Below are positions 4,903 through 7,131 of a stretch of 64,000 bases of DNA, one piece after another (the stretch's first letter is position 1; each line of letters opens with the position of its first letter). The translations under genes were made by a program, and so were the position numbers. The stretch comes from Entomortierella parvispora E1425 (lineage: Eukaryota; Fungi; Mortierellomycota), in the NCBI GenBank assembly GCA_020891255.1, contig BQFW01000007.1, forward strand, positions 1,364,001 through 1,428,000, written 5' to 3'. A model generated the notes under the pieces. The model was not told the DNA's origin. It saw only the letters and a list, made by a program, of their open reading frames with translations, and made no database searches.

Positions 4903-7131
4903 TTACTCCATTTTCTCGTCTGCATCAACAACAGCACTAGCAACGGGCATAGAAAACACAAGACAGCGTTCCGAGTCCTGGTTGTCCTTCAAGGCGCGCT
5001 CAAAATTCATGAATGAAAAGATCTCTCGGACACGCGATCCCATTCCACTTCCAATCTCCAAGATCACATACGCGCCCTTTGCCATGATGCAACTTGTTTC
5101 CTTGGTCGTCTCTCCAGCCGCTGGCTGTCGTTTCTGCCAATCCAACAAGAGACTGTTGGCCAAAAGCTCGTAAGCTCCATACCCACCCTTTTCTGCAAAG
5201 AGCGCTACGGAGGGTTCATGTTCTGTGCCCGCAAAGGTTTTCTTCAGTCTGGTGGCCTTGCTGCTGTCCAAATACGGCGGGTTGCAGACAAGAATATTAA
5301 ATTCCTGAAAGATATTGCAAGAAGCCTGCAGGTTGCCGAGATCACCGTGCTGAAAAGTGGCCCGATTTGTCATGTTATGAAGCGCCATGTTGATCTGTGC
5401 GACATTGAGAGCCTCCTCACTAATGTCCACACCGAGCCCGCTCGAAGATGAAGGGAGAGAGTGAAGAAGGGCGAGAAGCAGACAACCACTGCCTGTACCG
5501 ACGTCGAGGACTTTGATGGGGGACGGCAAGTTTTGAGAGTAATCTATGGCGGCTTGCACGAGCGTCTCAGTACTGGGTCGTGGGATGAGTGTTGCTGGGG
5601 AGACCTTGAATCTCAGTCCACAGAAATCCTGACAGAGATGAAAAAAAAAGTATGATATTGGCACAAGGTCCTATAAATTCATCGAATCTACGAAGGACAG
5701 AGGGTACTCTTACCTTTTCACCGACCATGTAGGCGATAGGCAGATCGGCTTTCCGATCGTAATTCTCTCCTGCATCCTCTAAACCTCCTCGACGAAGTTC
5801 ATCGCGTTCGTCCGCCTTTCGTTTAAGTCTCGCCTTTTGCTCCCTAATCCTCAACTGCTCAAACTTCCCAGGCTCCTCCATCTCTACAGAAACCGTTTGC
5901 GTTTCCTTGGAAGGATGCAGAAATTCCATCTTGACCAAAGCCGACATGAGTCCCTTGTTCCTATTGGCTTTCAACGGTCGAGTGTTGCCACTGTCGCCTA
6001 CCATTGGATGTCCTGCTGCCATTAGGTATCGACGAATGTTGACACCCATCGAAGCTTTGGAGGGCCGGATCTCCAAAGTTGAGAGGTGTCCTGCTTCGTT
6101 GGAGTGGCTGAGCTGAACGACTTCGATGGATTGAATAAAAGACGCATCTTCTAATGTAGAATCAATTGGGATGACACTTCCGGCGCCAAGTAAGTCATCG
6201 ACTGATGCATTTGACGTATCGGCAGAGGGTATCTGTTGCTGTTGTTGCTGTTGTTGTCCCTGATCATCAATGGTTGGTCGAGCCCAAGCTCCATGGCAGA
6301 TAACTCGAAATGTCCGAGAAATTTCTCCCGATCTAAACATCTTTAAAAGTTTTAAGCGCATGTCGACCGTCTTCGCGACCAGCACCTATTCGTCAAGAGT
6401 TCCATAAATGACGGTCATCATTAGTTTCTCAAGATTTTGTGCAAATTTCGACTTATTTCCCAGAATTTTTACACTTACCAGTCCATTGGCAGCCTTCTCC
6501 AGTCCATGAATCGCACATGGAACACGCTGGATTCCTACGGCAGGCGAAATGTTCATTGGGATCTCAAAATCTTCGTCGTCATTGTCTGCTCCTTCTCCTG
6601 CTTCATCGTCGTCCTCGATCAAAAGTTCCTCCACGTCAATGCCTTGTGCCTCCTGATCAACATGGGCGGAGGACGCCTGCAATGAATACGGAAGCATGAA
6701 TCCAAACGCCACCATAGTCCTGCCGGATGGTTTGACCACTACGGCCAATTCCTCATCCTCGTACCGGACGCCCAGCTTTTCCTTTCCATAGACGCTCTTG
6801 TGTGCGGCCCGAACATCAAATCGTAGTTGGACCACATCATTGGTCGCCAAGATTCTTGTCACTTCAGCCAGTTCCCCATTGACCGTAACCTGTCAAATTC
6901 CCAACACCATGCAGTAAAAGAAGATGAAGAGACATGAGTTTTGTGGTTTCTATTACCCTTTCGTCCTACGACTATTTCAGCAATGGATGTGAGGTTACGT
7001 ACCTCTTGCCTCTTGAAGCACTGGCGCATCTGCTCCCGCGACTTGACAATAGCCTTCCATTGACTCAGTACAAACTTCCAGACTCTGTTGCCATGGTCAA
7101 CCTCTGTCACGATAGCTTCCAGGGTCTTCAT
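4903..7131 (-). CDS. Fusion protein: S4 domain + degenerate RluA/RluD-family pseudouridine synthase + PrmC/HemK N5-glutamine methyltransferase; 4 exons (7131-7003, 6889-6479, 6385-5714, 5628-4903)
   Basis: Three phase-0 GT-AG introns give RQE|VTVNG (S4), NGL|VLVAKT (RluA motif II region) and [18 protein letters not shown] (PrmC). RluA motifs VVVKPSG, GHPMVGD, EFLHP; PrmC motifs [31 protein letters not shown], LEIG. Confidence 0.85.

Follow-up and report, generated by a model that had tools for sequence, protein, structure and literature searches.

A fungal gene joining an S4/RluC/D-type pseudouridine-synthase fold to a PrmC/HemK-type glutamine methyltransferase

Structure of the fusion gene

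The 64,000-nucleotide stretch of Entomortierella parvispora E1425 analyzed here (GenBank assembly GCA_020891255.1, contig BQFW01000007.1, positions 1,364,001 to 1,428,000 of the forward strand; hereafter the window, whose first letter is position 1) carries on its minus strand a gene in which an S4 plus pseudouridine-synthase module is fused to a C-terminal methyltransferase of the PrmC/HemK type. The gene consists of four exons, each of a length divisible by three, separated by three GT..AG introns that all lie in phase 0 (Table 1). The ATG at 7131 starts the fusion open reading frame (ORF), and the spliced product of 645 amino acids is identical over 645/645 residues (100% identity) to the NCBI protein EMPS_05213 (P0215, 'hypothetical protein EMPS_05213 [Entomortierella parvispora]'), so the same model had been reached by independent annotation. 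At the third junction ...PIAYMVGEK is joined to DFCGLRFKV..., and the rebuilt segment aligns residue for residue with Escherichia coli PrmC. Two claims of the original prediction, that the exons are joined in frame by canonical phase-0 introns and that the last junction restores the PrmC signature, are thereby confirmed.

Production of the methyltransferase depends on splicing. Retention of intron 3, whose length is not a multiple of three, would put this domain out of frame, and no start codon in exon 4 precedes the conserved hairpin; the C-terminal domain can therefore come only from the spliced message. The sequencing-run search listed no RNA run holding this stretch or genome, and the case for splicing in E. 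parvispora is therefore comparative. E. chlamydospora (L001) has the gene in the same four exons, and in a Mortierellaceae contig (L002) the synthase-to-methyltransferase junction is one uninterrupted ORF. A JGI contig (L003) and the corresponding locus of Neocallimastix californiae (L004) share 95-100% identity in six blocks, and five genomic segments of 117-301 nt are absent from L003, three of them placeable at exact GT..AG borders. L003 holds a complete fusion ORF of 588 amino acids with in-frame stops upstream of its ATG, which makes that N-terminus complete, and it is a spliced Neocallimastix message joining both modules.

The L002 locus (1330-3291; Logan SRR6256840) has no equivalents of introns 2 and 3 and is interrupted at the position of intron 1; its adjoining acetyltransferase is also one continuous ORF. 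The contig represents either an intron-poor relative or an RNA-derived sequence with one retained intron.

Table 1. Features of the fusion gene, in window coordinates; slashes mark intron positions in N. californiae
Feature	Position	Strand	Basis or remark
Exon 1, aa 1-43: start codon and first part of S4-like domain	7003..7131	minus	Splice reconstruction; start agrees with P0215 and E. chlamydospora exon 1; in-frame stop upstream
Intron 1, 113 nt, GTACGT..AG, phase 0	6890..7002	minus	
Exon 2, aa 44-180: end of S4 (to ~aa 66), first half of synthase fold, acidic disordered insert, motif II	6479..6889	minus	
Acidic disordered insert in synthase fold, aa 124-160	6539-6649	minus	pLDDT <50 for residues 124-159
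Codon GAG, Glu174, catalytic-Asp position of RluA-family synthases	6497..6499	minus	phmmer alignment to E. coli RluD
Intron 2, 93 nt, GTAAGT..AG, phase 0	6386..6478	minus	Position and phase as Neocallimastix intron (TSGF/VIAAK)
Exon 3, aa 181-404: second half of synthase fold, Arg298, linker helix, first PrmC beta-hairpin strand	5714..6385	minus	
Q-rich disordered insert in synthase fold, aa 215-262, with eight-Q run	6140-6283	minus	
Conserved linker helix, aa 353-379	5789-5869	minus	
First strand of PrmC beta-hairpin, PIAYMVGEK	5714-5740	minus	
Intron 3, 85 nt, GTAAGA..AG, phase 0, within PrmC beta-hairpin motif	5629..5713	minus	Position and phase as Neocallimastix intron (ILGEK/EFFG)
Exon 4, aa 405-645 and stop: PrmC/HemK class I SAM methyltransferase domain, with SPATLIPRP (Gln-stacking loop)	4903..5628	minus	TIGR03534 E 1.6e-45
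DVGTGSG motif, exon 4	5485-5505	minus	
NPPY motif, exon 4	5272-5283	minus	

The two modules

Exon 4 alone matches the PrmC equivalog model TIGR03534 (Table 1). The full protein exceeds the cutoff of the HemK family model TIGR00536 (hemK_fam; 130 bits against 115.5) and, unlike PrmC, falls below that of the PrmC equivalog (170 bits against 199.1); it is also below the cutoff for PrmB (TIGR03533, 101.5 bits against 229.7). Residues 392-626 align to E. coli PrmC residues 63-270, the alignment taking in a 34-residue stretch with the glutamine-stacking loop. Within this region a beta-hairpin/loop segment of 27 residues aligns with PrmC residues 67-93, its SPATLIPRP loop is identical to that of the E. 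coli enzyme, and Leu418 is the equivalent of Leu89, which in PrmC stacks on both SAM and the substrate glutamine (PMC3152332). The SAM-binding GxGxG loop is represented by DVGTGSG (residues 446-452) and the catalytic motif by CNPPY (residues 519-523). The Cys at position -1 is a small residue, as found before NPPY in PrmC, Mtq1, and HEMK1, whereas HEMK2 has Phe there (PMC8904536).

Structural comparison gives the same picture. The AlphaFold model of the 645-residue protein (pLDDT 89.3, pTM 0.82) matches E. coli PrmC (2b3t_A) with a Z score of 28.9 and an rmsd of 2.1 over 234 residues at 28% identity; the next methyltransferases reach about 21. The C-terminal ~250 residues constitute a complete catalytic domain of the PrmC/HemK type of N5-glutamine methyltransferase, and the PrmC/HemK identity proposed for this part is supported by the TIGR00536 score and this structural match. 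It resembles E. coli PrmC/HemK (PDB 2b3t, 1t43) and HEMK1/Mtq1 in the class I SAM fold and in each of the motifs described above. In contrast to HEMK1, it is not preceded by a mitochondrial presequence.

The principal departure from PrmC lies upstream of the catalytic domain. A Pfam scan of the fusion protein gave no match to PrmC_N (PF17827), the five-helix bundle with which PrmC binds release factors; the sequence alignment begins only at PrmC residue 63, and the structural alignment reaches back to chain residue 19, enough for one helix at most. The N-terminal docking bundle of PrmC is absent, and in its place stand ~390 residues comprising an S4 domain, an RluC/D-type fold, and a linker helix. 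The fusion of modules that had been predicted is therefore real, but it is a domain replacement and not a simple addition.

It takes the full-length protein together with the family profile and the structure to identify the N-terminal module clearly. Exons scanned separately yield sub-threshold synthase matches only, and the single full sequence scores 26.5 bits against PF00849, just below the cutoff of 26.8, and E 6e-5 against RluD in the PDB. With a profile built from 57 family members, the match to E. coli RluD reaches E 5e-22 and spans RluD residues 5-250, the S4 domain included; RluC (E 1e-13) and RluA (E 1e-11) come next. The model aligns with RluD catalytic domains at Z ~19, and full-length RluD (2ist) covers model residues 1-391. 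Neither TIGR00005 (48 bits, cutoff 192.7) nor the RluD model NF008385 (37 bits, cutoff 351) is reached. Chytrid and Neocallimastix orthologs pass the PF00849 cutoff, and even for these better-preserved proteins the NCBIfam models do not tell RluD from RluC, so 'RluC/D-type' is the safe label. The earlier description of an RluD-like S4/synthase module holds insofar as an S4 domain and an RluA-family fold are present with RluD as the best solved match; it goes too far in that RluD is inseparable from RluC and the catalytic Asp has been lost.

That loss is seen in motif II, where the fusion has HGLEKAANG and RluD has HRLDKDTTG. In the phmmer alignment Glu174 occupies the place of the catalytic Asp139, and the preceding Arg of the HRLD motif is replaced by Gly. 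The Tyr of the KxY motif is Phe in the E. parvispora protein. Like RluD and RluC, the bacterial 23S rRNA synthases, the module has a colinear S4 domain and RluA-family fold with the KPSG lysine (Lys96) and the motif III arginine (Arg298), and the S4 signature is kept; it differs from them in these substitutions, in its two disordered inserts, and in the Pfam and NCBIfam cutoffs it misses. With Glu for the catalytic Asp and Gly for the HRLD Arg, the synthase module of E. parvispora is most likely not an enzyme. A conserved long helix connects the S4 domain and synthase fold to the methyltransferase, and synthase module, helix, and methyltransferase are predicted to form one rigid body.

Outside the fusions, all matches to the N-terminal module are stand-alone S4 plus synthase proteins, and any names they bear are bacterial or RluD; the exception, an Apophysomyces protein with methyltransferase domains, is a shorter member of the fusion family. 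A word search in which 8000 candidates were scored found no stand-alone eukaryotic ortholog of the module.

Distribution, descent, and selection

The extent of the family emerged from an exhaustive search with exon 3, since a word search with exon 4 sees only proteins of up to 422 aa and returned nothing but fragments and bacterial PrmC. The exhaustive search recovered 85 relatives, about 45 of them 540-780 aa long and containing NPPY, and more than 45 sequence clusters show the fusion architecture. Wherever the source of a long member was retrieved by name, it is a fungus outside Dikarya, about 15 long matches having had no name look-up. Named holders include about 40 Mortierellaceae; Phascolomyces, Phycomyces, and Apophysomyces among the Mucorales, the last two from shorter public models (414 and 507 aa); Endogonales, Basidiobolus, Kickxellales, Harpellales, Dimargaritales, and Zoopagales; and nine chytrid genera, two Blastocladiomycota, and Neocallimastix.

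In a methyltransferase tree that contained no Dikarya Mtq1, 38 fusion domains fall on one side of a branch (SH-aLRT 99) and 60 PrmC sequences, taken as bacterial from name or length though a few may not be, fall on the other side together with two oomycete HemK proteins. Groups within the fusion clade follow fungal taxonomy, and N. californiae has two introns at the exact position and phase of window introns 2 and 3. Because the introns are shared and the fusions form one clade that follows taxonomy, the fusion and its gene structure are older than the split of zoosporic and zygomycete fungi and are neither unique nor recent. The original prediction had named a widespread and already characterized architecture as evidence against itself; the architecture is indeed common in non-Dikarya fungi and machine-annotated, some members bearing the names HemK1 or release-factor methyltransferase in UniRef and NCBI, but a literature search found no paper on a fusion of S4/synthase and PrmC domains.

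Three environmental fusions from JGI, ENA, and Logan assemblies (P0245, P0246, and P0247) group with the Blastocladiomycota member in the methyltransferase tree, and the family might reach beyond named fungi. Public models of the orthologs are inconsistent (P0007, P0124, P0224, and P0320-P0325). E. chlamydospora BGZ79_006762 is cut to 353 aa with exons 1-3 intact upstream (L001 3612-5747), Actinomortierella ambigua DFQ27_003627 ends at the intron-3 position, the model of Mortierella sp. 14UC is 1035 aa long and merged with a cyclophilin, and Coemansia models exist in variants of 200, 597, and 779 aa.

The catalytic residues of the two halves differ in conservation. NPPY is invariant in 57/57 aligned fusions, whereas the catalytic-Asp column of the synthase holds E, Q, G, K, or A in most lineages. 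The residue is Glu in Mortierellaceae, Endogonales, Basidiobolus, Dimargaritales, and Zoopagales, Gln in Mucorales, Gly in Blastocladiomycota, and Glu, Gly, or Lys in Kickxellomycotina (Kickxellales and Harpellales); six chytrids and Neocallimastix have Asp. None of the 30 aligned Mortierellaceae shows Asp, 28 having Glu and two lacking the motif in their public models. Within this family pairwise identity is 62-68% for the structured N-terminal parts, 68% for the methyltransferase, and 23-33% for the two disordered inserts. Since Asp has repeatedly been lost while the N-terminal module evolves as slowly as the methyltransferase, the module appears to be kept for something other than catalysis, and its S4 signature and basic RNA-cleft residues point to RNA binding.

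Candidate functions

The methyltransferase is PrmC-like in every substrate-contacting element and both halves are of bacterial type, which makes a GGQ-type glutamine its most likely acceptor. The compartment is a separate matter. In 57/57 members the S4 domain starts 4-64 residues after the Met (mostly 15-30), and the first 25 amino acids contain acidic residues in all of them, three on average, with a net charge near zero; these N-termini look unlike a matrix presequence throughout. Neocallimastix retains the fusion with intact motifs and expresses it, and the hydrogenosomes of mammalian gut fungi have no genome (PMC10978972). Both the missing presequence and the persistence and expression of the family in Neocallimastix speak for a function that is not confined to mitochondrial translation. 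The proposal of a 'probably mitochondrial-type' substrate accordingly finds no support.

The explanation favored here, which we consider about evenly balanced between right and wrong, is a protein glutamine methyltransferase steered by a non-catalytic, synthase-derived RNA-binding module towards a target on an RNA-bound protein. The synthase module would be a pseudoenzyme that has taken over substrate selection by anchoring the methyltransferase to a structured RNA. Large-subunit rRNA, to which RluC/D naturally bind, is the most plausible candidate, and the glutamine to be methylated would lie in a GGQ-like loop of a protein that binds this RNA or assembles with it. RluA-family modules are known in comparable roles. 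RPUSD3 is a non-catalytic module of this family on large-subunit rRNA (PMC12710931), and in Trypanosoma brucei mt-LAF3 acts on large-subunit rRNA with a dispensable Asp (bioRxiv 10.1101/2023.02.23.529727). The structural matches of the N-terminal module include chains of mt-LAF3 (PDB 7aoi, 6yxx) as well as RluD as it sits on a pre-50S particle (7bl5). Human RPUSD3 and mt-LAF3 thus share with the fusion a synthase fold that lacks or does not need the catalytic Asp and serves as an rRNA-binding scaffold, but they are stand-alone mitochondrial proteins without a methyltransferase, related to the fusion at the level of fold and family only.

Fusions involving either partner have precedents. PrmC/TrmB of Rickettsiales (NCBIfam NF002421, a model matched by the fusion) likewise joins a PrmC domain to a second translation-related enzyme, but with another partner and domain order, with the PrmC N-domain region retained, and without a synthase fold. 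Yeast Rib2, a fusion of Pus8 to a deaminase, is a precedent for an RluA-type synthase joined to a second enzyme, though it has no PrmC domain.

Several points weigh against steering by a dead RNA-binding module. The premise that Glu cannot replace the catalytic Asp in this enzyme family comes from mutagenesis of TruA. In the chytrids and Neocallimastix that keep Asp the module may still be an enzyme, making the fusion simply bifunctional. A ribosome-tethered enzyme would have no access to a GGQ loop buried in the peptidyl-transferase center, so its target would have to be presented off the active ribosome. By analogy with PrmC, which recognizes the closed, free form of RF1, a ribosome-tethered mode of action is not what would be expected. 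The bacterial or mitochondrial ancestry of both halves would also fit a plain mitochondrial role like that of Mtq1.

This last possibility, a credible but improbable one, is the strongest competitor. The fusion would be the ordinary mitochondrial release-factor methyltransferase of early-diverging fungi, equivalent to Mtq1/HEMK1 and acting on the GGQ glutamine of free Mrf1-family factors, with the synthase module serving either as a co-expressed mt-rRNA synthase (active in chytrids, decayed here) or as a protein-docking substitute for the PrmC N-domain. PrmC is the best family match and all glutamine-binding elements are intact, both halves have bacterial-type proteins as their closest relatives outside the fusions, and HEMK1 methylates all mitochondrial GGQ factors (PMC8904536). 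The HemK1 and release-factor methyltransferase names already given to family members agree with such a role. The top matches of the exon-4 word search included no canonical Mtq1 with PrmC_N from Mortierellaceae, the best non-fusion matches (P0011, P0014, and P0015) look bacterial, and an Mtq1-type look-up in the Atlas returned bacterial clusters and one Basidiomycota cluster only. Against this role stand the absence of a presequence-like N-terminus in all 57 members, the Neocallimastix N-terminus being demonstrably complete, the retention and expression of the gene in an organism without an organelle genome, and the fact that constraint is as strong on the dead module as on the methyltransferase.

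A more specific form of RNA-guided methylation is proposed only tentatively, and its chances are rather poor. The fusion would represent a third eukaryotic system of the PrmC type, so far unrecognized, alongside Mtq1/HEMK1 and Mtq2/HEMK2. It would be a glutamine methyltransferase of early-diverging fungi that acts outside mitochondria under RNA guidance: its dead RluC/D module would read large-subunit rRNA and bring the enzyme to its target, either a ribosomal protein or a GGQ-type factor, on the free or pre-mature large subunit. The original prediction had drawn on a link between helix 69 of the large-subunit rRNA and RF2 in E. coli. The genetics behind it are documented, as defects in rluD and prmC are both relieved by the same RF2 variant (PMC5373646). 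The mechanism it suggested is more awkward: the substrate of PrmC is RF1 in its closed, free form (PMC3152332), and a release factor sitting in the ribosome is therefore not a plausible substrate. Given the shared RF2 suppression, the fusion naturally points to a functional connection of the rluD and prmC activities, and under a third system of this kind the physical coupling of these functions, linked only genetically in E. coli, would become directly testable.

Protein glutamine methylation is rare, and the enzymes known to perform it (PrmC, PrmB, Mtq1/HEMK1, and Mtq2/HEMK2) select their substrates by a helical N-domain or by Trm112. Here a whole fungal lineage appears to have exchanged that selector for an rRNA-binding synthase fold, repeatedly discarding the catalytic residue of the synthase and keeping the methyltransferase intact throughout. 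If the enzyme is indeed steered by RNA, this would be a new mode of targeting among protein methyltransferases, and the synthase fold would be a clean natural example of a catalytic domain converted into a pseudoenzyme adaptor. Neocallimastix lacks organelle translation, and survival of the fusion there hints at an as yet unrecognized substrate.

It is very unlikely that the methyltransferase now modifies RNA adenine (m6A) in place of protein glutamine, the whole protein becoming an RNA-modifying enzyme guided by its S4 and synthase module. NPPY enzymes do include RNA m6A methyltransferases, TrmM (Z 21) and METTL16 (Z ~19) are weaker structural matches of the model, and the N-terminal module is an RNA-binding fold. 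PrmC is nevertheless well ahead both in structure (Z 28.9 against at most 21) and in family score (170 bits against 28 for the TrmN model), and the PrmC-specific beta-hairpin and SPATLIPRP loop are conserved almost letter for letter. Finally, the notion that gene prediction wrongly joined a decayed synthase gene to an adjacent methyltransferase gene is rejected: although no RNA run of the E. parvispora genome is listed and some public ortholog models are split or truncated, exon 4 has no start of its own before a hairpin motif that intron 3 divides, the ORF is continuous across the junction in L002, a spliced Neocallimastix transcript covers both modules, full-length fusions fill more than 45 clusters, and intron positions are common to E. 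parvispora and Neocallimastix, all of which, with the identity to EMPS_05213, bears out the earlier claim that the fusion is no artifact of neighboring ORFs.

The genes flanking the fusion are of other kinds. Beyond its start codon and on the same strand, positions 7555-8352 (minus strand) encode a mitochondrial carrier protein with three Mito_carr repeats (E 2.4e-56). Upstream of the fusion in E. chlamydospora and L002 lies, by contrast, a GNAT acetyltransferase in divergent orientation; gene order around the fusion therefore varies within the genus. The downstream neighbor (3390-4568, minus strand) is an ORF of 392 aa (466 aa if counted from its first ATG), for which Pfam gives nothing at E <= 0.001.

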